Assembly: GCA_030704615.1 (NCBI GenBank)
Contig: CM060732.1
Span: 48,236,001-48,300,000 of the forward strand
From: Takakia lepidozioides
Taxonomy: Eukaryota > Plantae > Bryophyta
Direction of reading: 5' to 3'
Length of the DNA: 64,000 bases
Part shown: piece after piece, positions 11,502 to 64,000 of the stretch
Layout: each line of letters starts with the position of its first letter
How positions within the stretch are numbered: position 1 is the first letter of the stretch
Notes under the pieces: model-generated
Databases searched by the model: none
Seen by the model: the letters and a program-made list of their open reading frames with translations, nothing else
Told to the model about the DNA's origin: nothing
Translations under genes and position numbers: made by a program

Positions 11502-11506
11502 CCATC

Positions 11507-14439: not shown

Positions 14440-14545
14440 TACTCAAACCCTAGAATCGGGGCATGAAGATGTGGTGCACGATGTGGCCATCGACTACTAT
14501 GGGAAGCGGCTGGCCACCTTCACGATGGACAACCGCAGTCGCAAG
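14440..14545 (+). pseudogene. SEC13: Orphan N-terminal fragment of Sec13 (WD40)
   Basis: QTLESGHEDVVHDVAIDYYGKRLAT matches the Sec13 N-terminus; followed by AAG|GTATGG; no downstream Sec13 sequence seen. Confidence 0.8.
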
Positions 14546-30020: not shown

Positions 30021-30024
30021 AGGA

Positions 30025-34576: not shown

Positions 34577-37500
34577 TCACTTGACACTTTTACCTTTCCT
34601 CATACTCTTCTCTGGCCATAGAGTCACCGTGCCTTTCATGTGCGCTAGTGTGGTCTGGGGGGGGGGGGGGGGGGGCAATCGTCCAAATTTGGGCAAGGCA
34701 ACGTAACACTTGGAAGCATGATCTCGTGGACTTTCACCTTGTACCACCCGGAACGAATTATGTCCTTGCAGTGAAACTTGTCAACCCCGACTATTCCCAC
34801 CACTTCCGCCTTTGCTGCGGCTGTCTTCGACGCTTGTCATTGGGGTTCAGGAGAAACACAGGATCTGATATCTGCAGACACCAACATCAACTGCCACTCA
34901 GCAACAAACATAGCAATGACAGGGTGAAAGTCAAGCGCACGTGGTCATGGAAACGATCTTGGTTGCCACGATACTGAATCAGCAGCAAATTCAGGGTGTT
35001 TCTTCGTACCTTGAAGCGAGGCTCGTCGTTGAGGGTGGCAACCGAGAAAAGCTGCCCACGTGTCTTCAACTGCAGTAGCAAAAAGAGGTTTAGTCAGACG
35101 GATAAGAATAACATGAACTCTGGTTGCTGCAATGGTATAAACACACCTCCACGGAGCAAGCTAACAAACACCCTACTTAGACCCTGCAAACTACAACTTC
35201 ATGGCAAAAATAACCCTACTAAAAACCAGGCAAAAGCAAGGAGCCATGAATGCATCCCTGGGGAACCGCGTCCTGCTGCGATGATGGTGCCGGGGACAAC
35301 CCACTCCTCTTGCTCACCTGCAATGAACACACAATGCAATGCTTCAGGAAGTGTATCCATAAAGGAAACCAGCCAAGCAAGTTTGCGGAGAGGGGCTGGG
35401 AACAAACCATACCTTGGGCGCTGCCTCCTCATGCCGGGGGGCAGATCCGGAATGCTGGCGCCGTAGCACTATGGTCCTTGGCGCAGAACCCACCTTCTTC
35501 ACATTCGACCCCAATGTCACTCCCTGTGGTCCCTGCAAAACATATAGTGCCAGCCATGCGTGAGAGGGCATCCGGGGGGAACAAAACAAACATCTCATTT
35601 GGCTTCGATGTCATCTTGCAAACAGTAAGGTTAGTTTCACCTGCATGGGCATAGAAGCACTTCCCCCAACGACCCCATCCTCTCCCGCATTCAAGCTGCC
35701 AGTCGGGGTCAGCTTCCGCGTACTTAGGAAGACACGCACATCCTTGGAGCAAAACAAATCTTGGCAGTAGGGCCAGACTGTTTCTAAAAGGTAGTCTGAA
35801 TCGGGCCCCTCACTGACATTGCTAGTAACATTAAACAAAAATGGATGGACCATGTTCAAAGGGGAGTTCCCCTTCCCCTTGTGTGGTGAATCGTCCACTA
35901 AGAGGGTGTTGGATTCGTTAAATCCAGAAAATTCCGACCACACCCTCGATAGTCTCTTTTGTAAGTTCTGTATGGTAGGCCCTTTTGTGGGGTGTGGCTC
36001 TATCGAGGGGTCACACTCCTCTTGTGACCACACGAAGAGGGGAGAACCCTTGACCCCCTGCACCACCACTTTCAAGATGTCTGCAACATTCCCCTTGGAA
36101 GCACAGGACCATATCCCAATGTAGAAATACCGGAAGAGAAGGTTTAAAAACTCGCAGACCTGGGGCCTTGGGAAAACATACTTGTTGGTGGTCAACACCC
36201 ATGGCCAATGACGCCTCGGGGGTTGGGCTGAAAGTTAGGAATAGAGTGGCACAGGATCTCGTTCAGGTCTAGAACAATTAGTTTCGACTTTTCAATGAAA
36301 GGAGCTTTTGAAGGGGTGTCACGGGGTCTCACCTCAGTGGGTTGGGAGACAACAGTCACCCCGGAGGGCAAAGTTTCAGTCCCCCTACAGCCTGGACCAG
36401 GCAAACTACCACCCTCTCCCCCTACAGCTTCCCCTTTTCCCCCATCATCAGCAATGACCCCCCCATCGTCCATGTCATCCCCATCAACTTGCTGGACCTC
36501 TCCCCCTTCAACGAGTGGACCCTGCCCCCCACTGTGAATATCATCAACAACAGGCTGGACCTCAGTCACATCCCTACCCACTACAATTACTTCCTCATTG
36601 TCAAGTACAATGGTCGCAGCAGGGGGGTCTTCCATACTGCCACCCGTCACACCCCCTTCTTGCCCCATCATGAGTTCCACTATCTTCTTCAGCTGTGCTT
36701 CCATACCCCTCTCCCGCTCCGCAGAGAGAGCCGCAAGTCTCTCCAGGGCCCCGATGCGGGCTGCCATTGAGTTCCCCGCTCCCTGCGCATACAAACACCC
36801 ACCCGTCATGTTTAAAAACCAGAAGAAGAGGCCGAATGCGCGGGATTTCAGGCATTCCGAGATGGTTGGATTTAGTATAACATCCCTCGTGTACCATGCG
36901 TGGGGGACCCATATACCCACCAAATCTTAGTACAACAACAGATTCATGAATGGAAACCGGACTTCAAAACATACCTGGCTCAAAACAGACTCGGATGGGG
37001 TGCCAATCGCAGCGTTCTTTTGCTCCGCCCCGAGCTCAGACAGTGACGGGCTCCACGCTTTGCGTCTTTTCTGTATTTGCCCACCCACACACTGTCAGTA
37101 CAAAATGCCAGGAGCATATGGACAAAGCACTACATTGCATATCACATAACAACAAATTCTGCACAAGGGATAAAACCCACTTGTGGGTGTCTCTTCCATC
37201 GCAACGTGCCACAACGTAAGAGCAACGAGAAGGGGGTGTGGGAGATTACCAAACGGGCTGCTTGGCCTGCAATTCTTGCCCGGCCCCAACGCGAGGGGTT
37301 CGTGACACGAGCACGCGCTTGCTTCATCCCTTCGGCCTTTGCAAGTCCACGAGGGGACTCCCAGTAGGCAACAAGCTTATCCCAATAGGCGGGTTCAGTG
37401 TTCATTGGCCTCACACCAGTCTTCGCCCATTTATCTTTCAGTTTTGCTCTTTCTCCTTTCATTATCTTCCCACATTGCTTGACTATAAAATCGCGATTGG

Positions 37501-37978
37501 CAGGGATAGGTGTGTACTTGTACATGCCCTCTATTACCGTTGACATGGCACTCTGGGACTGCTGGTCAATGTCTTGTACGCTTGAGTCAAGGTAACGCAA
37601 TGCCAGGCCACGCAAATCACGCTGCCAATGTTCCTTACCTTCGCAGCCAGCATTGATGACTCCATTTCCATGCACCTCCACCTTGTGGCGCTTTAGCCCT
37701 GCAGCCACCCTTCCCTCTCCATCTCCTTCCCACTTTTTCATGGCATGGCGTCGTTCCTTCCTCAGCTCTGATGACCGTTTCCTGCCCCCATGCTCTGGAG
37801 TAACGCCGTCATGCGTTGTGGGGGGTGACTGATGTGTGCCGGTGGAGGGAGGGCCGTATGGAGATGTGGGAGGCCCCCATTGTGACGTGACAGCATCAGG
37901 AAGCCAGCGCCACAACCCCGAAGGGCTCCCCATGGTGCACTCTGCTATGGAAACCATCCGGCAGGGGGTGGGTGCCAA
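34577..37978 (-). pseudogene. Multi-exon TnpA-like gene with an internal FCP1-type domain
   Basis: 37142-37978 YWDKLVAYWES...KQARARV.NPSRWGR (Transposase_24-like); last exon ~34870-34577 KAEVVGIVG...FH...GWYKVKV...LPCP...GTVTLWP (Tnp1/En-Spm C-terminal-like); exon joins not fully resolved. Confidence 0.65.
35700..36290 (-). pseudogene. FCP1/SCP-like (NIF, HAD-fold) phosphatase domain
   Basis: KLIVLDLNEIL, RPQVCEFL, IGIWSCA, PLFVWSQEEC, KRLSRVW, NTLLVDDSPHK; frameshift near 36200. Confidence 0.85.
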
Positions 37979-38554
37979 GGTTGGTGTTGGTTGGCATTAT
38001 ATGGTGGCTGTGAGTGCTTTGCTGCAGCTTCACTCCCCTTCCGCTGCCACAACATCCCACACACAAGGTGCATCAGCTGTAGTCCTGCTAAACACAACGT
38101 CACCAGAGCACAAACCATCCCACAACCACAACCACAACCACAAGCAGCAGACCTCAAACCCACTCCCCTGCAGCGCAAGTGCCAAAAAATGAAAAGGAGA
38201 AGGACAGAATGTCCTCATAACATGTGCGGCCATTCATTGGTGAAGAAGCGGAATGTGGATGGGTTCACATCAGTACCACATGAAACTTACTAGGAAACAG
38301 AACATCCATCCGGGTTTTCCGCATATCCAGTAGACATCTATTCATACAATCATGTGCTGGCTGTATGTGCTTGCCCAACAACGGAGCCCCAAAAGGCCTA
38401 AAGACTCTCAATGTTGGTAAACATAGGTGCATGCACAATTCAATTGATAGCTTGGATATCTGGTGGTTTGTCTGGTGATAGCACCCCGGGCAGTGAATCA
38501 GACAATGAATATTGTGATTGTGGAGCCCACAGAATGGGCAATAGCACTCTCTCA

Positions 38555-39720: not shown

Positions 39721-41934
39721 AGTGAGACTCAGCGCTTTGCCCTTCCTGTTATCCCACTTTCAGTTTGAGGAGAACTCAACACCCAAAAAACATGAACACG
39801 AGTAGGGGTAGAACTCACCCCATGCGCAGCGGGTTTGTGCCGTTTGCGCATCTTCGGAGAGACTCTGCAGATGGAGGTGCAGTTTCCGCCGAATTGTCCT
39901 CCACGTCGTCGTCGTCGCCCATGCTGTACTCGCTTGTGTCAGAATCCGAGCTCGAAGACCGCCCACCGTACTGCCTTCCTTCTCGCACCGAGGCCATCTT
40001 CAGTGGATTCAGTCAAGCCAAGCGGGGGCTCCTTCGCACCGCGGGGCTGGAATGTGCAGAAGTGGGAGGAGGCGATGTTGCCTCGGCGGTCGAGCGCTTC
40101 TTACTAGACGTGGACATAGACCATGAAAGACCAAGACATGCAAAGGAGGAAAGAAGGACAAGGAGGGGGGAGTGTGATCACACACCCCCCCAAACTTGGG
40201 TGAAGATCCGGCCGTTGTTGTTTTCAAATAGGAACACGTGTCGTGCATCCGACACTATGGCCTTTTCGACTTTGAGACGTTTCAAAATAACCACTTTCAA
40301 TCCTCCAGACAACTAGATGTAGTGATTCACACAACTGACATGGATCCGTTAACTTTATTTCGTTCAAAATTGGGCGAAGGAAACACACTACAACGATGCC
40401 GTGTATGGCTCCGCTTTACATGCATTCTTGGAGAAAATGCGCATGATCAGAGAGAAGTGAACATAGTGCTCTGCCAAATAATTCAGCAAAAACAAACTCA
40501 ACTGTAGTGGTCCATTCGACAGAGAAGGGTCCATTCGACACCCATCGCACCATGCCAGGTTGAGATCCTCACACACACACCTGCACACCGAGAATTTGCG
40601 AACCCACATCAGTTGGGAGAACATGGAAATTACCCCGTGGATCACATGCAAGCATGAATGGGAAATGGAAGGAGAATTGCATGGGAGATTTTGGTGTACC
40701 TGCTCGACGTGCAACTCTGTCTACATACTCCATAAGTCACTGTCCCAAGACCCAAGTGGACAGGGGAGGCCGGTGAGTCTGTACCACAAATGGTAGTAAT
40801 ATAGCAGAGGGTATTGCCGCCCAACTCGCAAAAGCCGCCGGCTGCAGGATGCTAGGCATGCGAACTCCGGCACAGCACGCCTCCTCTGCACCCCACTCCG
40901 TCCCAACCAGTGCAAAACAACCGTGCATGCATTGACTGCCCTCTGGCTTTCTCTCCAGGCATTTGGGGGTCTGTGATCTGCTACACGTAAGTGTCTTTGA
41001 AGACGACGATCAAAGGATCCGGTCACTTGCAGTTGCCGTCTCAAGGGCAGCATTGCAAGAATCACAATTAAGTAAGAAAGATGGTGGAAGAAGCTGCAAA
41101 CTGGAAATGAGTGAAGTGGCAGGGCGATGCTCCATTCTTAACATGCTCCCCTTCCTGCCATGGTGATAGAGCCACACAAATGGACTCCCTTCCCGCCACG
41201 GTGCAATTTCAAGGCAACGGAACGGGATTGTCCGCCGAAACGTGATTTGGAGTGCACGGCCGAATCCGTGATGGAATTCGACCTTCCAATACATGATTCC
41301 TTAATCCGTCTCGCTCTTCCACTGAGGGTGGCATGGGGCAAACTACCCCCTGCTACAAACTTTTGATCGTAATGCGATTTTGAGAGAGGAATCGATGCAA
41401 CGGAAAATTGTGCAGACGATGACTGGCGATGATTGGATTTCACAGAGCATGGCCTGAGACAAGTGGCGCAGGTTCTGGCCTTGTAGTCGGGTTGTTCGCA
41501 CTTCAATGCACACATTTGATACACATTCGACCATATGCCAAAGATCACAACGTCCTGAATCCTGAAAATTGAAATTCCACGTACGTCCTCCAATTCCTCA
41601 CACACACACGAACTATAGAGGCAGGTGGTTTTCGAGGATGTCGTTGTTTGAGCCGATTTTGGTCATTTCTCTCAGTGTCTTGTTGAAAGGATTCCAGTTA
41701 TGATGGGAAGCATCTTGATGGCTTTTAAATGGTTTGTTGTTGAGTGTAACTTTCCATCATGTTCTGGAATCTACGAGTTGGTATAAAATGTCAACTGTCT
41801 TCTCTGCCAAAGGATGTGCGGCTGAACCTTTCAAATTGAGATTGCGGGAGGAGGGAATTGACGGTAGTGAAATAGGAGTGGCAGAGCCAAATTGAGGAGT
41901 CTCTGCAGAGGAGAATCCGGCCCCCTGCAACGGC

Positions 41935-43530
41935 GTGCACAAACTGCATTGCAGAGGCTCCCCAACAAAAATGACTCCCCCTCGCCCATGCGGAGGACTT
42001 CCAATTAATCACCCATGTAGACAGAACACCCGGGATGACAGGTTGTGGGAAAGAGAAGTGGCACGTGCCCGAGCCCTTGGGCTTTCAAGGATGTCATGCC
42101 CATGTGAACGTTGTTTGGGCACTACAAGTAGATCTGAGGACGGTGTGCGCACACATCTTCTTCACCACAAAAGACATGAAGCATTTCGGGTGTGGATTGG
42201 AGATGGACCTGCAGACTCCAAGGACGAGGAGTGGGCACAATTCGACAATGCACACCTCCGGGGGAGCCATACAGACAGGCCAGACCAGGACTATGTCATG
42301 GGCGCAGGACATGAACCAGGCATGGACAGAGGGGTGGAGATTACTCGAATGTTGCAGGAAGCATTCCACATCATGGACGATGCTGAAGAGGGGGACGGCG
42401 CTGCGACAACTGGGAATGGTGATGACGCACGAAATGAAGGCATTCAGGTGGGGGAAGGCGTGGAAGGAGGTGGAGATGGAGATGAGAATTTGACGCACTG
42501 TACGAGGGATGCAATTCCACAAAGCTTGCTGCCACCATGCTGTTGATGAACCTGTGCACAACCCACGGTGTCTCAGACCATTTTGTGGACGAATTGTTCT
42601 CTTTGCTTCGGCTGAACTTGCTTCCACAACCAAATGTAATGCCAAAAACCTGTCACATGGCCAACAAAATGATTGGGAAGCTCGGCCTCAACTACACAAA
42701 GATACATGCATGTCCAAAAGGACATGTACTTTTTAGAAGAGAGTACAAGGACGTTATGGAGTGCCCCAAATGTGGTGCAGCCCGGTACCATGATGTGGGC
42801 AGGTTACAACAGCCAGCCAAGGTGTTGAGGCACTTTCCCCTTATCCCCCGTCTATTACAAATGTACAAATGCAAGACCATTAGTGAGCTCATGACTTGGC
42901 ATTCCAGGAATGCCTCAAACGATGGTTTGGTAAGTCATGTCCCAGATTCCCTTGCATGGAAGCATATAGATGCAACTTGGCCCGATTTCGCCGAGGACCC
43001 ACGCAATGTGTGATTGGCTATATCTACGGATGGAGTAAATCCGTACGGATCAAAGAGCTGCACATGGTCCACATGGCCGGTGCAGTTGGTGGCATACAAC
43101 ATGCCACCATGGTTGACAACAAAGAAATTCTTTGTCATGTTGTCTCTCTTGATTCCAGGCAAGGAGTCCGTGACAAATTCAAACATAGATGTGTATTTGC
43201 AACCATTGATTGAAGAGCTACAGGAACTATGGATTGGAGTTGAAGCTTACGACATTTTGAAACCAGTAGGGCAACGGAGTTTCATCCTCCGTGCCATACT
43301 TATGTGATCAATCCACGATTTCCCCGCATATGGCCTTCTTGCGGGTTGCAGGACCAAGGGCTACAAAGGGTGCCCCATTTGTGGGCCCTATGTGGATTCA
43401 TGGCACTCAAAGCCATTGGGGAAGATAGTATACATGGGGCATCGAAGATACCTTGCAAGAAACCACCCCTACCGACAAGCAGGAAGGCACTTCAATGGAT
43501 GTGTTGAAAGGAGAATGGCACCAAATGTTG
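41935..43530 (+). pseudogene. CACTA Tnp2/TnpD transposase (Transposase_21), 3'-truncated
   Basis: CPCERC...H; IHACPKGHVLFR..CPKCG..RY; LRHFPLIPRL; AWKHID..WPDFAEDPRNV; STDGVNPY; YNMPPW; IDVYLQPLIEEL..LW; HDFPAYG; CPIC. Two stops and one frameshift. Confidence 0.95.
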
Positions 43531-43791
43531 TGAAGATGGCGGGAGCTATGTGCATCAAGATCAGCGCCACAATGCAAGCATGCATGGTACCCTTTGGTGC
43601 TTAGCCCCGAGCAAACAGTTAGTCATGTACTATACATCCCGCCACATTAGCAAAAACAAAAAGTTGTCATGTGCATGGCCCATAATGCCATCTACCCCAC
43701 TATGATGCACAAAGACTGTCGCCGCTACTTCAATCAATCCCAATCCTCATCGATATTATCCGGCATTGACAAGTGAATGTACGTGGGTTGT

Positions 43792-45839: not shown

Positions 45840-46763
45840 TCAATCGATTAATCGGATGTATACAAAGTACATGCAATAGTATGATGCAAATAGTTCGCTG
45901 CCAGCCCTAATAGTCCTACTAGCACATGTCATCACAAACATGTGCATCCCCTCACAGTATACTGACGTACGACCACAAAAACTCTCATGCCCATCGCTTC
46001 GCTCGTCCCATACTACATTGGTTGTCTTAGGATGACCAAAAGAACTATTGACCAGCCCAGCAACATTGCCGAAGATGTCAGGGTCACCATCACAAAATCT
46101 GATCTCAACGGGAGACAACCCTCGTCTACGTACATCCTGTCCGTTGACACACAAAATGTAGGGTAGGATGTATGGGGCTTCGAGGCGTAATGTACGGAAC
46201 TCCGCGGAGGTGTAGTATGGACCGTAGTAGGGAAACAAGTCCACCATGCTGTTTCTCCGAGGAGGAACCACAATATCATTGACCATGAATAAACCCCGAC
46301 CCATAGCAGGGTCTGTAGCGACTCTCACAACATACCGTCTCCCCCAATACTCAAACTCCACATTTTCTCGGATGAGGGTGGGAGGGTCGAGATGATTCCC
46401 CCAACAACGAGGCTGGACGGTCCTCAGTAACATCGTCCTATGCGCTTCCCATCGGGGGCGAGGATCCGGCTCAGGCCGCCCAAGCCGAAGGGGAGGAAAC
46501 CTAGGGCGAAGCCGACCCCTCATAGGGGTTCGGGGGGCACATGCACGTGGAGGTGGAGGTGGAGGTGGAGGTGGAGGTGGTATTGCTGGCAGAGGAGATG
46601 AAAGTGGAGGTGGTTGAGGATGTAATGTCAGAGGTGCAGCTGGGGGTACAACGTCTGGATCAGGCAAAGAAACAGACCCGGGGGGGGGGGGGGGGTGGGC
46701 CTGCTCGTCGCCGGCCATAACGCCTACGACACCTACGATACCCCTCGACCCTACGCATCTCAT
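45840..46763 (-). CDS. SET-domain protein with Pro-rich N-terminus (start and exon limits uncertain)
   Basis: GRGLF..NDI, FPYYG, DG...GNVAGLVNSS...N, ASRTIRAGSELFASY match SET motifs; 307 uninterrupted codons. Confidence 0.8.
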   Translation of the reverse strand: MRCVGSRGIVGVVGVMAGDEQAHPPPPPGSVSLPDPDVVPPAAPLTLHPQPPPLSSPLPAIPPPPPPPPPPPRACAPRTPMRGRLRPRFPPLRLGRPEPDPRPRWEAHRTMLLRTVQPRCWGNHLDPPTLIRENVEFEYWGRRYVVRVATDPAMGRGLFMVNDIVVPPRRNSMVDLFPYYGPYYTSAEFRTLRLEAPYILPYILCVNGQDVRRRGLSPVEIRFCDGDPDIFGNVAGLVNSSFGHPKTTNVVWDERSDGHESFCGRTSVYCEGMHMFVMTCASRTIRAGSELFASYYCMYFVYIRLID

Positions 46764-48927: not shown

Positions 48928-50611
48928 AGAGAGGGAAGATACTTTTTGTCATGTCAAGACAAAGACAGGACCCCTAGGGTCGTTGTCATGAATAAGAAGA
49001 ATAATCAGACATATCAGCCACTTAACAGTGGCACCATCCATCAATCATCAAGCTTAGAAAATCCAGAATTATATCCATGCACAATAATGTGTTCAAGTCA
49101 GAATTATTCATAACCCAAAGAGTATTCCACTGATGCTGATTGACCATCATTCATGATCATGACACATTCAGAGGTCTGGGTGGATGGCGGGTACTTGGCC
49201 ATATTTTGGCCTTGATGTGGTGCAGGTCAAATGGTCATACAGATTTACTGTCCGCAAGCTGTAATCCAAGCATACTTACTCAAACCCCATGGGTGTCATG
49301 GAGGGTTTTTTTTTAAAAAGAAAAAAGAACACTTGGATATCACAAATTTAAATACCTTGCCCTGCCAGTATTTGTTTAAACTGGTCTGCAGGACAGCTTG
49401 CCCCCACAGGGGTATGTCTGGTAAGTTTTCCAGACTACCCCTATACCATTATTTCTTGCTACAGCTGAAAATCAAAGTTCATGACACAACAAGGTACAAA
49501 TAAAGGACTGCAGACACATCCTGTGACAGTATATGATACTCTCAGCACACCCTATTCACATCATTCCACGTTTGACCATGTCATTACACCATGTCCAGGG
49601 GGTATTTCCACTTAACCACCCTGGCTGCCTCAAAAACCAGTTACCAATTATATTGCTGCCATATTTCAGTGTCAGCCAAATAGCCACAGGTAGAATCTTC
49701 ACAATACCCTGGCCTAAGCATCTAGCTAACAAAGCCATCCGGGTTGGAATATAACAGGGCCATTTTACCATCATGGGTACCCGAGTAGCTGCAGCAAACA
49801 GTTCCTTGCAACCTCTCATTTTGTTTCCAACTACCATAAGGTAAGCAAAGCAAACTAGGGCCTGGAAAACAGATGTGTGTCTCTCACACAAGCCATCATA
49901 AACCCGGCTGTCACAACAAAGCAGAGGTCTTCCACTGCCTGGGCCGAAATAGCCCACCTTAGAAAGCATTACACTTGTTCTTCATAAATAAAGGAAGGAA
50001 AGAGGTAGGATCAAGAAAACCATAGAGTAGTTTAGTTTTTCAACATTTTAAGTTGAGTCCCTGGCAAACGATTCCTTCCCTTGCTCTGCAATCCCACTTG
50101 GCATCCAGCAGCACCTAGACATCAGTATTTCAAGTGGAAGCCCTCACCTGTGCACGTCCCAAAAACAACCACAACGCATTGTGAGTTAGTGAGGATGCAC
50201 GAGGTGAATAGCAGGCTTCCACACTTGCTATTGAGGTCAAATACACTTCAATCTAAGCGCAAAGAATGCGAAAGAAAGCAGGGAAGCATGACAAGCAGAA
50301 AAAGAACATTTTTTACTGTTTGGGGGAGAGTCGTCATCTCTCCACGAGCCTAACCGTGCAGGGAGGTCTTCGCCAGCACCACACCACTGCTACCTTAACC
50401 AAAGCAAAGTCTTGCCAAGCACAAGAAAAAAGAGCTCGGTCTCAAAAGGTAGGGTTTATAAAGGGAGGGAGAGAGACTTCCTTGTTCTACCAAGACGCCG
50501 CCATTCATCAAAGATCCAGAGGAGGGCTCCTAGGGAAATGTCATAAGCATGCAGGTGGTACCTCCGCCATCACTGCCGCGGTTCCCTTGTGCAGCAAAAA
50601 AACAGACAAAT
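48928..50611 (+). repeat. 1.7-kb direct repeat, copy 1
   Basis: Highly similar to 59825-61513 (paired ORFs 49533/60440, 49556/60463, 50266/61168). Confidence 0.95.
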
Positions 50612-52125
50612 GAGACAGTGATCTTCCCTCATCTCTAAGCCACCGCCATTGCCTTAAAGAGCCCGCCTAAGCGGCACTCATAGGAGCCATAAACACTCAA
50701 GGATTGGCAGCTCAAGGTATCTGCAACACGAGCACCATCGCTCCTCCCAAGCCGCCATCGCGCGCGCTCTCGCAGCGCCAAAAGAAAGACATTAGGGTTA
50801 TGCAGGGTTTTCCCCTGTCTGGCCCGTCATTCATCCTTCTCAGGATGAAAAACATCCGCCAGCCTGTACGCCCGACGGACGTTGTCCGTTTCTCATTCGT
50901 GGAAGATGAAAGACATCGTGCGTTCATCCTGTCTTGAACTCGACGGATGCAGTCCGCTTTTCATCTAGGTTAGATGAAAAACATCGGGGAGTTTTAAAAA
51001 AAAAAACTTTTTTATACCTGTCTTGCCCCGGATTTAGGTCCTGTCAGATGAAATCCTTTTTTCATCCAGGTTGGATTGAAAAAATAAAAACTGACGGGAG
51101 TTTTGCAATCAGTATATTCCGGTTTGATGTTCGGATGAAGCAAAAAAACCTCACACAAGTATTTAGTGAAGAAATGTTTCACTAGGGAAAAAAATGTATT
51201 TTGGATGAAAAACATCCAAAATTCCCTGCAACCCTATTTTTTCAACTTTTTCAAAAATGGAAGTCGGGACAACAATTCCATAAACCCAATTTCCAGAGGG
51301 AGAGAGAGGGAGAGAGAGGGAATCCCACCATCCAACCCCTGGTATGGCAGGCCCTTACGGAGTGAGTGTGGTATGCACTCACCCCGTAAGAGAGTGCATA
51401 CCAGACTCCTTCTCCAAAAGGGTAACCTCTCCCTACTCATTAGCAAATCCTTCGGAAGGTGTACCATAGAGGATTATCAAGCTATCCCTTATTCAATCTG
51501 GGTAATCAGAACAAGCATATGAAATCGAGCATATTGTTGGGGTATGTACTAAGCATAGACCCCAAAAGGAACTAGTTATAGAAGAAATCACATGTGTAAG
51601 AAACCATGGTATTTACTTACTCTAGTTTTTTGTGAACTCCACCATCATAAGCATATCTGCTTTCAAGGAAAAGGACACACCATATTTAGGCTGTCAAAAA
51701 TCACACCCTAGCGCCGACATTTTTGTGTGGTGCTACAAAGAGCGAAGCCACATCCAGGAGAAGCCAAAAAGCATGTGAGCCGAAGACCAACTAAATTCTG
51801 ACATAAGGCATTGGCTACAGGGGATCAGTTAACAAGAACGATGTATAGTGACCGGATCATGTAGAAGGTGTGTACATATGCAATTTTGATGATAAAATCG
51901 GCCACTCTGCCAGGTTGTAAACACCCCTTATTGGAAGCTCAGAGAGTGTGCGGCAACGTACACTGTTTGAGCCCACCTTTCTGCTTGTTTTTTGTTGTGA
52001 AAATCGGCCACCTTGGGCCCACTCTGCCAGGTTGTTAGCACCCCTAATTGGAAGCTCAAACAGTGTGCGTCAACGCACACTGTTTGAGCCCCCTTGTGCC
52101 CAGCAGTGATGTTACTCCTGTGCAG

Positions 52126-55100
52126 GAGGTCGTTACGAAGCAGGTGGCCGTGCATACTCGGGAGCGCCCATCCAACACAGCGCTGTCTTTGCGGGCGTTG
52201 AAGGACAAGGCACAAGTGGGAGGCAGCATGTGAGCAGTGGATTTGGAGACGGACAGCGCTGAACAGAGTCTCATTCAGGTAGCACCACCATTGCGATGCA
52301 TAGTTCAGTTCGTTTTTGCATTGTTAGAGATGAAAACTGGTGGAGCCAGCGGAGTATGCCCTGCATTTTAAGATGTCGTTGACGACAGCTTAATCTGCAA
52401 GCGCATCCTCAGCCTTACCCTCCTCTCTATTTCCCACATGTTCCAATGTAGTGCCAAATTAAGGTGTCGTTAACACAAGCTTAAAATGGGCCTGATTTGT
52501 CGATCAAACAATGGTTGATGTTTTGCAGAGGAAACAGAAGAAAGCCTAGGAGAGTCTCCGTGAGTTACCAGCCGAGAAGAACACAGCAGACCAGAACTCT
52601 GAAATGGTCGTCAACGTGGTGAATGAGGAGGAGGTGCCAAGGGTTCACTCTCCGCAGCGGGCTGTGGCTACAGTGGAGCAGCCAGTGGACACACAAGCAC
52701 GAGTGAAGGGGAAGACACAAGTGCAAGGAACAATGTGACCTGCAGAGAAGGGGTCTTCCAGTGGCCGTCCAAAGCCTGCTAAGGTTCGTTCTAGGTTGCC
52801 CATTCTCATCTGTGAGGGTTCCTGTGAATCAGAAAAGAGGTCGATAAGTTCGAAGCCTGCCATGGTTTTTTGAAGCATAGAAGACAAGGCTGGTGGGTAT
52901 TTCAGAGACTTTCATAAGAACTGGAGGAGGCTGATTAAGGCATCGTTGACGATACCTTAATCTGGTCAGCCATTCACATATTGAGGGTTAGTTTCCGCTT
53001 CATGAGTGGACTCTGAAGCAGAATGAAGAATGCAGATTAAGGCATCGTTGACGATACCTTAATCTGGTCTGCTATTCCCAGGGTTTCTTTGAAACAGAGA
53101 CGAACAGGCTTACTGTTAGGCATACACACTGGTGAGGGTTTCTGAAGCAGAATGAAACATGTAGATTAAGGCATCGTTGACGACACTTTAATATAGTCTG
53201 TCATTCCCGGTTTGAGGGTTTGAGTGGTGGGTAGTCTGCACAGTGAGGGGATAGCTGAAACAGAAATGAGGAGGGAAATTAAGGCATCGTTGACGACACC
53301 TTAATCTGGGAGTGGGAATCCGTTTAGCGAATACTTTGATGCAGAGAGGAACAGGATCAGGAGTTGACAATATATACATTCAGTGGTTGTTTTCTTCTAA
53401 AATATGGAGGACGATTAAGGCATCGTTGACGATGCCATAATCTAGCCTGTAAAATGTACGTAGAGGCATAGTTTGAGGCAGTGATGAACAGGATTAGGGG
53501 TGGATAGTCTGCCTAGTGAGGAGACGTTCGAAACCAAAAATATGAGTGGTATTAAGGCATCGTTGACAATGCCTTAATCTCGAGTGAAAACCTAGTTTTG
53601 ATTGGACTTTCAAGCAGAGATGAACAGGATCCAGGGTTGAGAGTATCAAAATTCAATGGCTATTTTGAACAGAAATAAGGAGGCAGATTAAGGCATCGTT
53701 GACGACAACTTAATCTGAACTGTCAAACACACTTTTCGGGCATACTTTGAAGTAGTTCAGAGACAAGATTAGTGGTGGGTACTCTGCACTTTGAGGGATA
53801 TCTTGAACATAAATGAAGATGCAAATTAAGGCGTCGTTGACGATACCTTAATCTGGAGTGTAAAATCTGTTTCTGGGGATACTATGAAGCAGAGAGGAAC
53901 ACGATCAGTCGTTGAGAATATGTTCATTGAAGGGCTGTTTTATACATAAAAAATGAGGCAGATTAAGGCATCGTTGACGACACCTTAATCTGGCCTGTCA
54001 AACACACTTTTCATGCATACTTTGAAGCAGATCTGAACAGGATTAGTGCTGGGTAATCTGCACTTTGAGGGATGTCTAGAACATAAATGAAGATGCGAAT
54101 TAAGGTATCGTTGACGATACCTTAATGTAGAGTGTAAAATCTGTTTCTGGGGATACTATGAAACAGAGAGGAACTCGATGATGGTGGAGAATATGCTCAT
54201 TGAAGGGCTGTTTTAAATACAATCAAGGAGGAAGATTAAGGCATCGTTGCCGATACCTTAATCTGGAGTGTAAAATCTGTTTCTAGAGATACTATGAATC
54301 AGAGAGGAACACGATCAGGGGTGGGGAATGAGGTCATAGAAGGGCTGTTTAAATATAAACAAGGAGGCAGATTAACGTATCGTTGACGACACCTTAATCT
54401 GGCCTGTCAAAAAAACTTTTCAGGCATACTTTGAAGCAGTTCAGAGATATGATTATGGTGGGTAGTCTGCACTTTGAGGGTTGTCTTGAACATAAATGAA
54501 GATGCGAATTAAGGCATCGTTGACGATACCTTAATCTGGAGTGTAAAATCTGGACTTCGATTCATAGAGGAAGAGGATGGGGTGTGGAGCGTAGTCACAT
54601 TCAATGAGTGTTTTACACAGAAATAAGGAGGCAGATTAAGGCATCGTTGACGACACCTTATTCTGTCCTGTCAAATACAGTTTGCTTACTTTCAATCGGA
54701 GAGGAACAGTGTCATGGGTCCAGAGTGTGACTACAACTTGATCTATGATATTATTTCGAATGTGGTGTATACTTTGAAGCATATGAAGTATATTTTTCAA
54801 AAGGTGGGCGTGTCTACAATCAAGGAGGAAGAGTCATAATAAGGCATCGCTGACGACACCTTAATAGTGGTTTGAATTGTGGGAAAACACAAATGAATGC
54901 AGAAAAAAAGGAAGAAGGCGGGGGAAAGCCAACCTGCACAGGAGACATCTGTTCCTGATACTCAAGATGAAGACCCATCTGACAATTACAAAGATAAAGT
55001 GCATTCACTGATGTATACCTCCAAGGTAAACTCCAGGAAGGTCATAAATTCCATGGAAGTTCGGGACGGCACTCTTATGATTCCCCTATGCAGGATGATT

Positions 55101-58100
55101 TCCATGCCTGCCGTTCGTCCAGCCCTGCATCATGATATCAAGAAGCTACAGGGTGATTTCATCCACGGGTACTTGAAGGGCTCCGCAGTTTTTTACGTGC
55201 CAGTACAGACATCCAGGGATCAGAAAAACTGGTTGACGAAGAGATTATGGCCAGTTGGGACCCGCTTTGGAATGAGGTGAATTCGGAGTTTGAGGCAGAG
55301 CTTTCCCAGAACCCATCTCACACGCAGTACATGGGGAAGATGTTCTTCGTATGGGATGGTAATCACCGTTTAGTTGCCTGGATGGAATATATCACAAGAA
55401 TGTATGCCGACAACAAAGACTGGCACCACCGAGTTCTGTCAATGGTTTTGGATCCACAAGGCAAAATAACCCAACTTATGACTGCCATGCACGATGTCAA
55501 CAAGTAAGTTTTGTTTTGTTTCCTCTTTGTGAACTACATTTTTGTCCCTTGCTTCATTTCTTGTACTCATTTTCTTTCAATGCAGGCGAGACGTCACACG
55601 TCACCACGAACATAGTGCATACACTGTTTCGGATGCAAAGTATAGGAGTCATGCCTTTGGAAACATTCTCCAGCGTCTTGTTTGCGGAGACACTGAAGAA
55701 ATGCCAGACAATCAAGAAGTCTGAAACTTGGTACAATCTAACGAGGGAAGCTTTCCTCGAGTACTTGTACGCGGTAAGACTATTTCCTTGTCTGTCTTGA
55801 TTTATCTTTCATTTTTGGTTTGAACTTGTCCCTACATGGCCTGACATGTAATAATAGGCCACCGTTCTTGTGTCACAGCAAGAAATTGCGGATGCTAGAG
55901 AGCGAGTGAAGCTGGAGTATTATGCCACTACTCCGGAGGAAGAGAGAACAACGAATGGGGTGGAGACCAAAATGAAAGATGAGATGGATACGGCACGGAA
56001 AAACCTCAAAAGTGCGTTTGACAAGCACATACGAATTGCTGACCCTGGGGTGGGAAAGGGGTTTCTGGAGCAGATTCGGATACACTGGAACAAGCCCACC
56101 AAGCCTGAGATGACACAGGAAAAGATCCACCGTCTGTCGATTTCCATGGTTGAGCCGGCTCAAAAGGTGAGGTGGCTCGAAATCTGGAACTCGGATCCAA
56201 TCGTCCGGGACACAAATAATTTCCCAAAACCGCATAGGGACCCTGAGACAGGAGTGGTGACATCAGTGAGCGATCGTGCATTTGAGACATGGTTGCACAA
56301 AGCCACCTTTTGGAGCTAGGTAAGAATTTCCAAACGTTCCACATTGTTCGCAATGACTTCGCTATTTATATGGTTGAAACACTGCACATATGGTCGTTCT
56401 TTTTGCAGCTGGAGAAGCGGGCCATTGAAACATTGGAGAAGTCACTACTAGACTACAAAATCACCATGACATCTCCCAGCATCAAGTTTGAGTCCTACGT
56501 TCGTAAATGGAGAAGGGAGCTCTGGAAGTATGCATTTTTCCGGGAGTTCGAGAAGGAGGGAGGGATTCTTCGATCTAATATTTCGATCATCAGTACAACG
56601 GCGAGGAGGCAATGAAACGTGTGCTGTACAGGTGCGTGCACTGACTCATTTCTCTTTCTGTGAGGGGGAAATTAAAGTGTCGTCAACGACACCTTAGTTT
56701 GCGCATTATAGGTATGCCCATATCCTGCTTACAAATGGACCTTGTGGGACTTTGATCCTGTAAGGGGGTTTGAATTAAGGGGGCCTCAATCTCTGCAGCA
56801 CTGTCCCTACTTTCAATTGCAATGCAGTCTTGTGCAGTTCTGTATTGTGTCATTCTCTTCTTTGATTGTTATCTGAAAGAAAATTAAGGTGTCGTTGACG
56901 ATACCTTAAATCCGTGCCCTCTTGGGATGAATTTGCCATGAAGGGGGATCGTACATGGTCTGATTGTTTGGAAAATTGGCAACATCAGTTATGGAGTCCT
57001 CTCTTAGTGCCTGGATTAAGATGTCGTTGACGACACCTTAGTCCTCAGAGTGAAATGCAGCCATTTATGGCAGTTCAATGGCCATTTCTATTGCGTTCAA
57101 GGAAACTATCTAAGCGGGATGGTCTTATTGTCTGCAGGTACTTTCGCTTTGTTCTTATTCCGGAGAACATACTGAGTGAGGATCCAGACTTCATTCGTGG
57201 ATGGGCGAACCCAAACGATGAAACCACAATGTACACTGCTGGCATTGTGAAGGACTGGGGTCGGGCACATTACCATGACTGTGGGTGGTACGTGGACTGC
57301 CGAGCTTCGACTCCCTGGGAGGAGAATGTCATGAGGAATCAGAATGAGAACGCAGATTCACTGGCCCCCCGGACAGATGAGGAATTGCAGCAAAGAGCCT
57401 TGGCGCTTCTGAATAAGAAAGAGCCTACAAAACCGGCCACCCCTGCTGACGGCAAGAAGAAAAAGAAGGGGAAACAGACAGTGGATGCTTCAGCGGCTGC
57501 TGGGGAAGCAGTGGCAGACCCTCCTGACACTGCTGGGCCAGCTGGGGGTTCTGTAGATTTGACTTTACAACCTGCCAAGAAACAGCAGACACAGGTCGCC
57601 ATCACATCCACCGCAGTAGATCGGCGCAGTACACACATAGCAAAGAAACGCCCTTACGGAGCACGGCTGTGTGTGTCCAGGGTGGTGGGCCCGCACTTCC
57701 AGCGTAAAATGGCCAACGTGAGCTTCCTCCGTATGATGGAGTCAAGAAAGTCCACTTTCGTGGGTGGCAAGTCACCTACATGGGACCATCTGTGCTCTTT
57801 CCTCACCCTGGTGAGCACGCCACATCTATCGTAATCTGATCATTTTTGTTGCATTGTTGGGGGAGCGTAGGTGGTGCATTAAGGTGTCATCAACGACATC
57901 TACGGTACAACGGATCACTGGTTCGGGTGTCTCCACTGCAATTTGTCAATCTCATTCGATTGCCTGTCCTCATTTCAGGTGACCAGGACGCCATGTTGGG
58001 TGAATGGAGTGCAGCAGCCCTACGCAACAGATCTTGTCATCCTTGACATCCCAGATGGGCTTCCGGTGCCTGATATCATTCCCACAGATGTGACTCCAGC

Positions 58101-58955
58101 CTGGAATGCTCATAATCCACTTTATTGGTAGTGGGCCTTCTCTTTCAGCAACAAGTTTCTGTCTGACGCTGGGTCGCTTTTGATTTTCCAGGGTGAAGAC
58201 ATGGCATCCCGCCGGATGCTTCACAACTACATGAAGTCCTCGGGGTTCAAAATCCGCAAAATTTGGACCTGTGTCAACACCTTGCCACTATCTAGTGCAG
58301 AGTTTCCCGGGCAGAAGGTACTCACCTGGGTTTTTTTGTGTGCTCGTGTTTCGTGGAATTGCCCTTAACAACATTGGTGCTGCTGCAGACACATATGTTC
58401 AAGGCCATTTGTCTTGCTCGAATTCGGCCAGACACCACTCCTGCTCATGTTGGCCATTTCGACGTTTGGGAAGGGGGGCTTCACATAGACCCGGAATGCG
58501 ACCCTGTGGAATCCGATGTTATCCACAACTATGTGGACTCCTCCCAGACATTGAAAAAAACTGGTGGCATTCCATGGAGAGGTGTGCGGGAGAAGTCACC
58601 CGCTTTCATGCAGACTTTGATTGAGACATGCAGCCGACATGGTGGGAAAGTGGTGGACCTGTCCATGAGAACAGGTTGGTGCCCAATCAAATTCCATTTC
58701 TTGGGTGCACTTCTTTGCCTTCAGATTGTGCTTCTTACTTTGTTTCGTGGATCCATTTGCACTGTTGCAGGGGCTTCCTTCCATGCATGCAGGCATTTTT
58801 TCGGGATGGAGGGGGACGAGCACCTCTACTCTCAAGTCATCGCACCTCTGTCTGGGGGTTCATCGCATTCGACCCAGACTGAGAACATTGTTGTGGAGCC
58901 GGATCTGCAAGAGCCCGATGCTCTGGATGTTGATTCCAATTTCTCATGTGAGTAA
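52126..58955 (+). pseudogene. Multi-exon gene: ParB/Srx-like domain plus beta-class N6-A/N4-C DNA methyltransferase-like domain
   Basis: Predicted exons 52126-52278, 52529-52783, 54903-55503, ~55581-55773, ~55858-56319, 56409-56631, 56712-56759, 57139-57810, 57979-58317, 58388-58674, 58771-~58950. VRP...IKKL..DF and FFVWDGNHRLVAW (55355); DLVILDIPDG (58030-58059), FL..AGSLLIF, REKSPAFMQTLIETCSRHGGKVVDLSMRTGASFHAC.RHFFGMEGD. Several stops and a frameshift. Confidence 0.75.
52367..54865. repeat. Array of 28-bp palindromes ATTAAGGYRTCGT-TG-ACGAYRCCTTAAT (~137-bp period in the core)
   Basis: Copies at 52367, 52458, 52934, 53036, 53165, 53278, 53414, 53551, 53687, 53825, 53962, 54099, 54235, 54371, 54508, 54635, 54838; dispersed copies at 56671, 56883, 57015, 57878. 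Confidence 0.95.
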
Positions 58956-59824
58956 GTGCTAGTTCAGTTGTGGCAATTCACTGACACGACGACGCATCCT
59001 TCCATTTCCATCTTTCTTGCACAAGTTGGGCAGCTGAATGTATATGGACTTACATTGTTTGTTTGTGTGTAGAGGAGCCCAAGGTCGCCACGGTTCCTCC
59101 CTTTCTTTGCAAACCTGCAATTTTTCCCAAGTCCGAAAGCAGATTTTAAATTGCCATGTTATGCGGAGGCTGCAGCTTCGGAATTTAGTCTCCTCTCTTC
59201 TCCCCCTGGTTTGCTTTTAAACAGAGAGGGTTTTGTGCAAAGCAGGGCTAGTGTCTTCATAGACAGTTCTGCCTTCGTTTTGGACGCCGACTCCAGTAGC
59301 ACGGAATATTCTTCGTGGAATGAATCTTTAGTTATTAAACAATTTCCTTTGAAGCACCAAATGGCCTCTCCACCTTCTTTGCAAATGTGTGTCAGCAACT
59401 ATGTCGACTTCTGATTGTTGATGAAAGGACAATCACAACCCTCACCAGTGGGCAGAAGTTCACTCTAGAGGTAGGGGGATTTAGCAACCACTACTGAAAA
59501 ATGCATCTTAGTTTTGCATTCATCTAGAAACTACATTCATCCATGTACCATTCGTCGAACATCCTTTCATCCCCCATTCATCCATCGTTCATCCATAACG
59601 ATGAATGACGAATGCATGATATACTTGACACAACCCGCAGTAATAGGTCGTCTAGGCCGAATAGGTATCCGCGGTTATAGGTGAGCACATGCAGATCCGT
59701 GAGCAGAATTCTGCTCACGGAATTTTCTGCTCACGGAATCTGCTCGCGGTTTAGCAATCCCCAAAAATCAGCATGGTAATCAATGGATAGTGTATGCAGA
59801 AACCACTAAGCATACTGGACAACG

Positions 59825-61513
59825 AGAGAGGGAAGATATTTTTTGTCATGTCAAGACAAAGACAGGACCCCTAGGGTCGTTGTCATGAATAAGAAGAATA
59901 ATCAGACATATCAGCCACTTAACAGTGGCACCATCCATCAATCATCAAGCTTAGAAAATCCAGAATTATATCCATGCACAATAATAAGGTCATGTCAGAA
60001 TTATTCATAACCCAAAGAGTATTCCACTGATGCTGATTGACCATCATTCATGATCATGATACACATTCAGAGGTCTGGGTGGGATGGCGGGTACTTGGCC
60101 ATACTTTGGCTTTGATGTTGTGCAGGTCAAATGGTCATACAGATTTACTATCCGCAAGCTGTAATCCAAGCATACTTACTCAAACCCCATGGGTGTCATG
60201 GAGGGTTTTTTTAAAAAAAGAAAAAAGAACACTTGGATATCACAGATTTAAATACCTTGCCCTTCCAGTATTTGTTTAAACTGGTCTGCAGCACAGCTTG
60301 CCCCCACAGGGGAGGGGGATATGTCTGGTAAGTTTTCCAGACTACCCCTATACCATTATTTCTTGCTACAGCTGAAAATCAAAGTTCATGACACAGCAAG
60401 GTACAAATAAAGGACTGCATACACATCCTGTGACAGTATATGATACTGTCAGCACACCCTATTCACATCATTCCACGTTTGACCATGTCATTACACCATG
60501 TCCAGGGGGTATTTCCACTTAACCACCCTGGCTGCCTCAAAAACCAGTTACCAATTATATTGCTGCCATATTTCAGTGTCAGCCAAATAGCCACAGGTAG
60601 AATCTTCACAATACCCTGGCCTAAGCATCTAGCTAACAAAGCCATCCGGGTTGGAACATAACAGGGCCATTTTACCATCATGGGTACCCGAGTAGCTGCA
60701 GCAAACAGTTCCTTGCAACCTCTCATTTTGTTTCCAACTACCATAAGGTAAGCAAAGCAAACTAGGGCCTGGAAAACAGATGTGTGTCTCTCACACAAGC
60801 CATCCCGACTGTCACAACAAAGCAGAGGTCTTCCACTGCCTGGGCCGAAATAGCCCACCTTAGAAAGCATTACACTTGTTCTTCATAAATAAAGGAAGGA
60901 AAGAGGTAGAATCAAGAAAAACCATAGAGTAGTTTAGTGTTTCAACATTTTAAGATGAGTCCCTGGCAAGCGATTCCTTCCCCTGCTCTGCAATCCCACT
61001 TGGCATCCAGCAGCACCTAGACATCAGTATTTCAAGTGGAAGCCCTCACCAATGCCCATCCCAAAAACAACCACAATGCATTGTGAGTTAGTGAGGATGC
61101 ACGAGGTGAATAGCAGGCTTCCACACTTGCCATCGAGGTCAAATACACTTCAATCTAAGCGCAAAGAATGCGAAAGAAAGCAGGGAAGCAAGACAAGCAG
61201 AAAAAGAACTTTTTTTACTGTTTGGGGGAGAGTCGTCATCTCTCCACAAGCCTAACCGTGCAGGGAGGTCTCCGCCAGCACCACACCACTGCTACCTTAA
61301 CCAAAGCAAAGTCTTGCCAAGCACAAGAAAAAAGAGCTTGGTCTCAAAAGGTAGGGTTTATTAAGGGAGGGAGAGAGACTTCCTTGTTCTACCAAGACGC
61401 CGCCATTCATCAAAGATCCAGAGGAGGGCTCCTAGGGAAACGTCATAAGCATGCAGGTGGTACCTCCGCCATCATTGCCACGGTTCCCTTGTGCAGCAAA
61501 AAAACAGACAAAT
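59825..61513 (+). repeat. 1.7-kb direct repeat, copy 2
   Basis: Direct copy of 48928-50611 with scattered substitutions and small indels. Confidence 0.95.
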
Positions 61514-62491
61514 AGGTGTCACAACTGCCTTCAAGTCAACATCGGAATTAAGTCCCACTACTCGCAAATGCAGAATGTCTCCCTCATCGGCGTGGGAAAA
61601 ATGGGGTTTGGCATGATATGATTGTAGTTCACAACCAAAGGGCATATCCTTCAGCCTTGACGTCTTTGCGATCTTATTCTGTGACGCATTTTTCATAACT
61701 TGTGAAATGGAAAAGCAGCTACACATCAAATTATTGCAAGGCCACTCAATGGCACTATGAACGTGTCGAGCATGCTGTCAGAAAACTAGACGGGCAAAAA
61801 CCCAATTCAACAGCCTCACCTAGCGTGGATACTTGGGAATTGATGCCAGAAGGGCATACCCGTATGCGCACTCCATCGTGCCTCCATCTAGCACATTCTG
61901 TAAATGTTGAATGACCAAAACCCCGATGTCACACCCTTCTGAGAGGCCACTACGTGCGCTCACAGTATACGAAGGCCTTGCCGTGTCAGGATTCGCATTC
62001 CCACGTCCTGCCATGTCCGACGCAGCACTTGCATCCCTGTCTCTGCCAGGTGGAGGCAACATATATTAAAATATCTATTCCCCCAAGGCCACATTTTGTT
62101 TACCTCTTTTTGTGAAAACCACGTCAGCAAATGTGCTGCCGAATCACAGGTGCAATGAATGCATAGTGGTTCATGGAGTCGTTGAGTCGACTACATATTC
62201 ACTTTAATGAATAAATATCTTTATTCCATTAATCGAATGAGGAATGAAAATTTGTAGTCGCGTGTGCAGTAATTACAACCACTTGTAATTTTGGTTTTTT
62301 CAAATTTTATGTATTTACGCAATTCGTGAAATAGCCCGGAATTATGCTACGACTCCGGAGTCGTTGACCCCACTTCCGTTCGCCGTCCGAAATGCCCTCC
62401 ATGGGCCCACATTGTCTGTTCCGACTCTCCAATAGTCCTAAGTGGTTCCCGGAGTGGTGGCGGATATGCAGTCGATTCGCTTCTAGTGTCG

Positions 62492-64000
62492 TTTGTTCGA
62501 AAGACGTCAAGAAAAACGATCTGGATGGTCGACAACGCATCATGCCGCTGCTACTACGACACCAAACACAACGATCCATCAGACATCCGATAGTGATCCT
62601 ATGCAGATTGATGCTATCAAGCCATTGACGCCACAAGAAAAACAAAGATGGCGCTCGAATGGATTATGCCTCTATTGCGGAGAAGAAGATCACATAGCAT
62701 TAAACTGCCCCAATAAGAGAAGATTCAAAGCTCGGGGCGCAATTCAAGTGTTCGATACGAGGACGTCGGAAAACGAAGATGTCCAGTCACAGTAGGGACC
62801 ATGCGGCTGGACACCACAAATCCCTTAAAAAAAAAAAGGTCTCTTTCTACCTCTTGACATGCACCTTGCTTCACAGTTCCAGTAAAAATCAAAGTGCAAA
62901 ATCGAGATATCTCTGTAGAAGCACTTTTGGACTCATGGGCTTCAACATGTTTTATTGACAAAAACTTTGCGAAACAACACAATTTAACGCTCGTAAAGAA
63001 CAAACTCTCGGCCCCCGTTGAAGTCATCAATGGACGACCGTTAGCATCAGGAAATGTTGACCATGAAACTCGACCACTTGAAGTGAAGCTTGAAGATCAA
63101 GCATCACATATTGTTTTCAACGTCATCTAGTCTCCAACGAATCTTGTAATCCTTGGACTTCCCTGGTTCGTACTTCACAATCCTAACATCGACTAGCAAT
63201 CGCGAAATTTTTTTGCAAGACAAAAATGTAGAAATATCAAAAGTATTCAACTGATGTTCCTTGGAGTTAGAGCTTTCATGAGAGCTACCAAAAAAGATGC
63301 GACATTTGCACTTTATGCGACTCCGATCAAGACCACAACAGACAAAAGTACTACAACAGTACCCACTCAATATCAAGATTTCAAGGATGTCTTCGAGAAG
63401 AAAAATGCAGACATATTGCCAGAACATCGACCTTATGACTGTGCAATTGAATTACAAGAAGGAGCCCAACCACCATTCGGCCCAATCTATAACTTATCCC
63501 AAACGAAGTTGGCTGCGTTACGTGAGTACATTGATGAAAATTTGTGGAAGAACTTCATCCGACATTAAAAAATCACCTGCGGGGGCGCCTATCTTGTTTG
63601 TGAAAAAGAATGACGGATCATTACGCATGTATGTAGACTATCGTGGTCTCATCAAAGTCACAATTAAGAATTGTTATCTGTTGCCGGTGATTTCTAGGCT
63701 TCTTGACCAGCTGGGACGAGCGAAGATTTTCACGAAAATTGATTTGAGAGGAGCTTATAACCTTGTATGGATAAAAGAAAGAGATGAATGGAAAACAACT
63801 TTTTGAATAAAGTATGGACATTTTGAATACAGTGTTATGCCTTGCGGGCTTACAAATGCTCCAACAATTTTCCAACATATGATGAATGACGTCTTTCGAG
63901 AATTTTTAGATGACGTTGTAGTCATTTATTTGGACGACATTTTGATATTTTCACAGAATGAAGAAGAACATGGTCGCCATGTACGCCTTGTCCTTGATAA
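62492..64000 (+). pseudogene. Tcn1-like Gypsy gag 3' part, protease and RT (runs off the window)
   Basis: DPMQID, CLYCGEEDHIALNC zinc knuckle, ALLDSWAS (degenerate DSG), [56 protein letters not shown]. Confidence 0.93.
62768..62812 (+). promoter_or_regulatory. Candidate gag-pol -1 ribosomal frameshift signal
   Basis: G_GAA_AAC in gag frame, 6-nt spacer, hairpin GTCCAGTCACA...TGCGGCTGGAC spanning the gag stop; protease ORF is in the -1 frame. Confidence 0.6.

Follow-up and report, generated by a model that had tools for sequence, protein, structure and literature searches.

The stretch of DNA analysed here, called the window below, comprises 64,000 nucleotides of the bryophyte Takakia lepidozioides (assembly GCA_030704615.1, contig CM060732.1, positions 48,236,001 to 48,300,000 of the forward strand). 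It holds a decayed, spliced gene that joins a predicted ParB/sulfiredoxin (Srx)-fold domain to a methyltransferase-like domain, accompanied by an array of palindromes upstream of the gene and in two of its introns. An earlier reading made from the letters alone (the sequence-only reading) had placed this gene at 52126–58955 and had quoted five motifs from it, and indeed WDGNHR, DLVILDIPDG, EKS..LIE, VVDLSMRTG and FFGMEGD all lie on the plus strand in this order. In our model they are distributed over nine exons, A to H and a last one, between 54903 and 59414. Exon A (54903–55503) carries the ParB/Srx-fold domain, with WDGNHR near 55355 and a frameshift near 55205–55214, while exon B (55586–55773) is conserved and matches no known family. 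Exon C (55879–56319), also conserved and probably helical, is closed by an in-frame TAG, and exon D (56409–56631) has a frameshift near 56600–56615. The start of exon E (57138–57810) is conserved and is followed by a Lys/Ala-rich low-complexity linker. The methyltransferase-like part begins with exon F (57979–58317), which contains strand 4, with DIPD replacing DPPY, and a TAG at 58129–58131; it continues in exon G (58389–58674), with PWRGxREK, the motif X helix and a degenerate motif I (DLSMRTG), and in exon H (58771–58951), the region of motif II (FFGMEGD). The last exon (59073–59414) was absent from the earlier model, and since it is kept in two homologous loci, L023 and L004 (L numbers denote such loci throughout), the end of the gene lies past the coordinates first given. 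On the other side, two putative low-complexity exons with stops, at approximately 52126–52279 and 52530–52783, have splice signals in their favour, and comparison with the first exons of L038, L023 and L025 showed no homology. Related contigs are placed on 52097–52378 and 52622–52958, in this same region; the contigs come from four DNA runs and were placed on 5,901 letters, and their placement shows where they lie, their depth not being a copy number. In other words, the core of the originally proposed extent stands, its 3' end has to be moved outwards, and its 5' portion is putative, with splice signals as its support.

The window exons were searched one by one by reference, and the G–H region, used as a query against 1.84 billion representatives, returned 67 relatives. 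The order of the exons is identical in L012, L016, L023, L025 and L039, and the intron sites that were read, those of L012, L034 and L002, are the same as in the window, so the spliced structure can be regarded as real. The window copy itself is dead, with frameshifts near 55210 and 56610 and stops at 56317 and 58129; the sequence-only reading had already noted stops. Its ancestors are a different matter. Namely, the proportions of nonsynonymous and synonymous differences (pN and pS) are 0.26 and 0.84 for the ParB half compared with L034, and 0.26 and 0.71 for the methyltransferase half compared with L002, values that point to purifying selection on both domains in the lineage leading to this copy.

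The fold of the N-terminal domain was approached through a homolog, L016, whose exon A was modelled from a 39-row alignment with a predicted local distance difference test score (pLDDT) of 91.8. The top Foldseek rows for this model are all ParB, Noc, SerK, Srx, PadC or KorB, none of them reaching an E-value of 0.001, and the best VIA-align match is KorB (Z 8.0, root mean square deviation 2.3, 90 residues aligned), followed by members of the same superfamily. An atlas comparison of exon A agrees with this assignment. On these grounds, the modelled domain has the ParB/Srx fold, as the sequence-only reading had supposed from its DGNHR motif. The evidence is structural, as Pfam reports a ParB family in none of the 39 homologous exons, and Pfam and Protein Data Bank sequence searches with the window's own exons gave no matches. 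Of 38 aligned sequences, 36 retain the GNHR segment, which corresponds to the GxxR nucleotide-binding patch. In canonical ParB proteins, the boxes of the cytidine triphosphate (CTP) clamp are GERRxRA and ENxxR; here, DGNHRLxA and MHDxN stand in their places, and because the canonical boxes are missing, a CTP clamp is only a candidate property of this protein. Folding exon A from one sequence gave an unreliable model (pLDDT 58), which was set aside. Exon C weakly matched an RXLR effector by profile (E 0.012, with E 2.4 for the best stretch), and this was taken as helical noise, as were matches to ribosomal proteins.

The relationship of the C-terminal domain is also seen through homologs. In particular, PF01555 (N6_N4_Mtase) matches 3 of 25 of them, with a best E-value of 7.6e-6 and 26.5 bits against a cut-off of 26.7, while neither PF01555 nor any other Pfam family matches the window's own exons. 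The ParB and PF01555 matches that had been expected were thus obtained in part: by structure comparison for the one and in a minority of homologs for the other, and neither from the exons of the window nor from the Pfam ParB families. Moreover, the ESM features of the domain stand at 0.94 to N6_N4_Mtase clusters, a profile weakly matches DpnA and M.RsrI at motifs X–I, and the permuted order of motifs, IV followed by X, I and II, is observed as originally described. Taken through its homologs, the domain is, by sequence, related to the beta-class N6/N4 methyltransferases. Its catalytic motifs are another matter. None of 15 homologs has (D/N/S)PP(Y/F) at motif IV, and all 15 have D-x-P-[DE] or something near it, the aromatic position being D, E or K; the strand-4 aspartate and the proline following it are conserved. 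Motif I lacks FxGxG and is mostly Dx(S/T)xxTG-like, although its last glycine is kept, as is the acidic motif II. The divergence that the sequence-only reading had pointed out is therefore genuine in both motifs, and what has to be revised is its association with the stops of this copy: by comparison with the homologs, DIPD and the degenerate motif I are the state of the family, not decay. As the divergent motifs are common to the whole family, canonical writing of N4-methylcytosine (4mC) or N6-methyladenine is less likely than binding, and the loss of the aromatic residue of motif IV suggests that canonical catalysis does not take place.

The palindrome next to the gene is 26 bp long and has the form arm-CG-TTGA-CG-arm. 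Allowing at most 3 mismatches, 19 matches are found in the window as opposed to 0 in 100 shuffles, which bears out the array reported earlier, and a looser match gives 21. Seventeen of these lie upstream of the ParB exon (52368–54864), three in the intron between exons D and E (56672–57041) and one, decayed, in the intron between exons E and F (57879–57904); none falls inside a modelled exon. The core of the array is a satellite of approximately 137 bp (period 136–138 bp) at 52935–54661, and most of the upstream palindromes are its units. Within this satellite, the palindromes are on average far better preserved than their surroundings, with a pairwise identity of 90% versus 59% for the flanks. 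The two core CpGs are retained in 39 of 42 cases, the observed/expected ratio of CpG in the spacers being 0.36. The core CpGs escape decay, and the dinucleotides next to them resemble decayed CpGs. Mismatches on the sense strand are more often A-C (38) than G-T (15), and the palindrome centres occur in both orientations; these two features together favour a site in DNA over a stem in RNA. Rfam gave no match for the palindromes, and a CRISPR (clustered regularly interspaced short palindromic repeats) array or a structured RNA was ruled out, given that the spacers are satellite copies and Rfam is blank. A viral scan for the palindrome and a phage search with P0017 also returned no match. A different palindrome, 36 bp long, occurs in two copies at 51937–51972 and 52054–52089; it has perfect arms of another sequence around the same CG-N4-CG core, and contigs show it in numerous other settings in the genome, also in tandem and with longer arms. 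It probably belongs to another, very abundant family, whose site it may be.

A clustering that presupposed no motif found arrays in L003, L023, L025/L030, L034 (in one group with L038), L035 and L036, each with arms of its own. The plan common to all of them is arm-CG-N4-CG-arm, the one spacer length that is enriched being that of 4 bases. L039, which was retrieved after this rule had been fixed, has three fitting sites upstream of its ParB exon, with the core CG-GATC-CG. Including the window, there are thus eight families with private arms and a common CG-N4-CG core, so that palindromes accompany the gene and differ by lineage, in support of the earlier idea of a protein with cognate sites, with L037 as an exception. 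The sister gene of the window copy (L038, by a tree of the A2 piece, support 98/94) has a CG-TYRA-CG core like that of the window, and its own palindromes lie in the same two introns. Palindromes are also found past the 3' end of the transposase in L036 and L038. L004, L012 and L016 have no array within the little upstream DNA that they offer. L039 is, at the same time, the sole match in 185,579 prokaryotic genomes (contig CADCWO010000058.1 of a cyanobacterial metagenome bin), and since the gene there has introns, it is probably plant DNA contaminating the bin. Finally, L023 contains, at 9979–14540, an apparently intact homolog that is head-to-head with a long transposase open reading frame and has seven palindromes upstream, which would make it a good candidate for experiments.

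That the gene originated in a transposon, as was claimed at the outset, is supported by its relatives, which adjoin a transposase; the class of that transposon turned out otherwise. Namely, upstream context is available for four loci, the sister L038 and L023, L030 and L036, and in every one of them the gene stands head-to-head with one transposase family, which in L038 has a SWIM match in Pfam (E 2e-4) and, by inspection, Mutator-like DDE and CxxH motifs and a GCM-like zinc domain. The window shows no trace of a Mutator-type transposase, and no inverted terminal pair (long Mutator terminal inverted repeats with a 9-bp target duplication) was found around the gene in the remnant. The simplest reading of the sequence is that a dead remnant of a Mutator element, devoid of its transposase, lies here among nested insertions. 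The elements with this gene are those of seed-free land plants, and the introns, the neighbouring retroelements and a plant-labelled run point to such a host. The remnant sits between two pieces of an unrelated repeat, 1.7 kb long, 96.6% identical and in direct orientation, at 48928–50611 and 59825–61513. The pieces were considered as long terminal repeats (LTRs) of the element and rejected, as they lack TG..CA ends, the left copy continues into its own flank, and the right one seems to be cut by a Gypsy LTR near 61517. The repeat is part of an abundant family with a minus-strand repeated domain, seen again at 38.5–39.7 kb. Many contigs lie on 47.7–51.25 kb and very few on 51443–51639, and for this reason the junction between repeat and gene is not a common arrangement.

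The sequence-only reading had put the gene inside a CACTA element, and one could still argue that this particular copy was captured by, and now travels with, a CACTA whose gene content includes Tnp2 and a SET-like gene, in the manner of the red-algal Plavaka cassette. A broken CACTA Tnp2 transposase, with Transpos_assoc and Transposase_21 matches, does lie at 41896–43600 on the plus strand, and beside it, at 45843–46763 on the minus strand, an open reading frame contains a run of prolines and weakly matches the SET domain at 45.8–46.4 kb (E 0.063). CACTA-like termini occur at 48063, 51180 (51168–51195) and 59489, those at 48063 and 51180 sharing a CACT(T)AGGG-A-run motif, with the start at 51180 facing the gene, and the lack of a Mutator transposase in the window fits a capture as well. 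However, no pair of termini encloses the gene, the ends at 48063 and 51180 point away from each other, and neither a paired CACTA right end nor a 3-bp target duplication was found in the window, from which nested insertions could have moved one. The scarcity of contigs between the repeat and the gene, the Mutator-borne sister gene and the lack of linkage to Tnp2 in all four informative relatives, which are of the Mutator type, all speak against it, and we regard such a capture, which concerns the class of the element only, as decidedly unlikely. Clusters of GATGAA/TTCATC repeats were also seen at 50825–51220 and 59500–59620.

What would such a protein do? Our preferred reading of these sequences, to which we give about an even chance of being right, is a transposon-encoded module for self-recognition and anti-silencing similar to VANC, in which the protein would bind the sites of its own family and keep host silencing off the element. 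Namely, the accessory protein of intact relatives would dimerise and bind the two-fold symmetric palindrome of its own family, the arms of which would confer family specificity. Canonical catalysis would probably play no part when the methyltransferase-like module engages the two CpGs, and nucleotide-dependent dimerisation or spreading would be the task of the ParB domain. As a result, silencing by 5-methylcytosine (5mC) would be kept off the non-coding regulatory parts of the element, as VANC does for VANDAL elements, which are themselves Mutator-like. A more specific version, in which a Mutator-borne ParB-fold protein loads at the CG-N4-CG palindromes of its family, either writes 4mC with a non-canonical site or shields the CpGs, and then spreads, its arm code co-evolving, is one we would propose only tentatively. 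The part of it that requires catalysis, an active non-canonical N4-cytosine (or N6-adenine) methyltransferase whose 4mC on the CG-N4-CG CpGs would block 5mC and deamination and mark self, can draw on the conserved strand-4 aspartate and proline, on the purifying selection on the methyltransferase exons, and on the sparing of the core CpGs while adjacent dinucleotides look like decayed CpGs; what is more, MpDN4MT1 of Marchantia writes 4mC at CG (10.1101/2021.02.12.428880). That said, the family-wide lack of (D/N/S)PP(Y/F) and the Dx(S/T)xxTG form of motif I argue against it. A change of SPPY to APPA abolishes the activity of the rotifer N4CMT (PMC8885841), and the methyltransferase domains of transposon-borne DIRS1, together with METTL14, are precedents for domains that are conserved yet inactive (PMC4738411). 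For these reasons, we think that an active enzyme is rather unlikely.

A further option is that the protein helps transposition, binding the palindromes and using ParB-like bridging or compaction to join the ends of the element or to load the transposase. The head-to-head arrangement with the transposase, the palindromes past the transposase 3' end in L036 and L038 and the ParB fold itself would all suit such a role, whereas the sites are mostly internal and intronic, not subterminal, and neither the retained methyltransferase-like domain nor the CpG-centred core would be explained; we therefore judge it to be improbable. Several observations weigh directly against our proposal of self-recognition and anti-silencing. 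The satellite copies are not independent of one another, no helix-turn-helix DNA-binding domain was found in profile searches of exons B and C, no RNA run contains the gene, and, of the transposase, SWIM alone has a Pfam match, GCM and DDE having been called by motif inspection. In addition, L037 has no array in 4.3 kb upstream, TG..CA replaces both CGs in each of the six copies that lie past the 3' end of the L038 transposase (L038 1–260, 42-bp period), and the arms in L035 and L036 vary in compensatory pairs inside single elements, which would also be expected from selection at the level of hairpins or from template-switch repair. The last three would sit well with palindromes that are not sites of the protein but arose as structures (cruciforms or RNA hairpins) or as by-products of mutation and were multiplied as the satellite formed. 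What such by-products would hardly produce is the exact CG-N4-CG spacing in eight families with unrelated arms, and the mismatch bias, the two orientations of the centres and the blank Rfam result speak against RNA stems, so that we find this explanation the hardest of all to credit.

Other features of the window were noted as well. A small, hairpin-rich piece at 51290–51435, resembling a miniature inverted-repeat transposable element, has GA-rich ends and many related contigs. At 61517–64000, on the plus strand, there is a probable Gypsy LTR start followed by a decayed gag-pol, Tcn1-like by inspection, and at 30022–31151, also on the plus strand, an integrase fragment is followed by a PHD-finger-like C-terminus. 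A cluster of open reading frames on the minus strand (35614–37996), including a NIF-type phosphatase (PF03031, E 3.8e-9), adjoins the repeated-domain region and is probably transposon cargo. Finally, repeats of approximately 1 kb with ACACAGCCCG microsatellites lie at 1728–2718, 10508–11501 and 31621–32596, the first two being 94.7% identical and resembling an LTR pair.

How does this system compare with those already known? ParB-methylase helper genes and inverted-repeat arrays adjacent to ParB genes were predicted in algal transposons in 2025, and to that extent the present findings have precedents. The accessory gene of Ectocarpus Sola1-1_Ec32 encodes a ParB-like and an N4C/N6A methyltransferase domain, and similar proteins are cited for green and red algae (PMC12477816). 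As here, both domains are in one accessory protein encoded on the strand opposite the transposase, and the proposed role of the protein was binding to, and modification of, the element that encodes it; the host, however, is a brown alga and the element belongs to the Sola superfamily, and the passage describing it mentions neither a palindrome array nor a degenerate catalytic motif (PMC12477816). In the red-algal Plavaka elements, the ParB accessory gene (PAG2/PAG3) similarly adjoins tandem inverted-repeat arrays, and the cassette occurs in several superfamilies, Mutator included, but there the fusion partner of ParB is a 2-oxoglutarate oxygenase and that of the methylase is SET, each pair in a gene of its own (10.1101/2025.02.11.637652), whereas the gene of the window fuses ParB to the methyltransferase-like domain. 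With bacterial ParB-parS, the gene shares the predicted ParB/Srx fold with its GxxR patch and the clustering of palindromic sites near the gene; it differs in having GNHR instead of GERR and MHDxN instead of ENxxR, in that no helix-turn-helix was found, in having no ParA, and in a site that is not parS. The rotifer N4CMT (PMC8885841) and Marchantia MpDN4MT1 (10.1101/2021.02.12.428880) likewise represent a permuted amino-methyltransferase fold of bacterial type in a eukaryote, but they are active host genes, N4CMT having SPPY and serving silencing, while the present domain, which has D-x-P-[DE] and is fused to ParB, is carried as cargo by a transposon. No paper on the land-plant form was found in the literature searched, mostly without subscription papers, and the Mutator form in a land plant, the degenerate catalytic motif and the CG-N4-CG rule appear to be undescribed.

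The closest functional parallel is VANC of the Arabidopsis VANDAL elements, stated to be the only transposon protein proven to bind its own element and change its epigenetic state (10.1101/2025.02.11.637652). It, too, is the accessory protein of a plant DNA transposon, with family-specific motifs tandemly amplified upstream and in introns, and its targets accumulate in introns as tandem repeats; on the other hand, VANC has DUF1985/DUF287 domains, 9-bp non-palindromic motifs and proven activity (PMC5735166). DUF1985 and DUF287 gave no Pfam match here, and no homology to VANC was seen. The main contribution of the window copy, which is dead, is an array of unusual size. For the algal ParB accessory genes, which are predictions, no site has been defined, and here a candidate site follows a simple rule, arm-CG-N4-CG-arm; with this rule, apparently intact relatives such as L023 and transformable plants, self-recognition becomes directly testable. 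If the proposal is true, this would be a second, independently evolved anti-silencing system alongside VANC, one that would bring ParB biology into eukaryotic chromatin and suggest an epigenome tool addressable by sequence.

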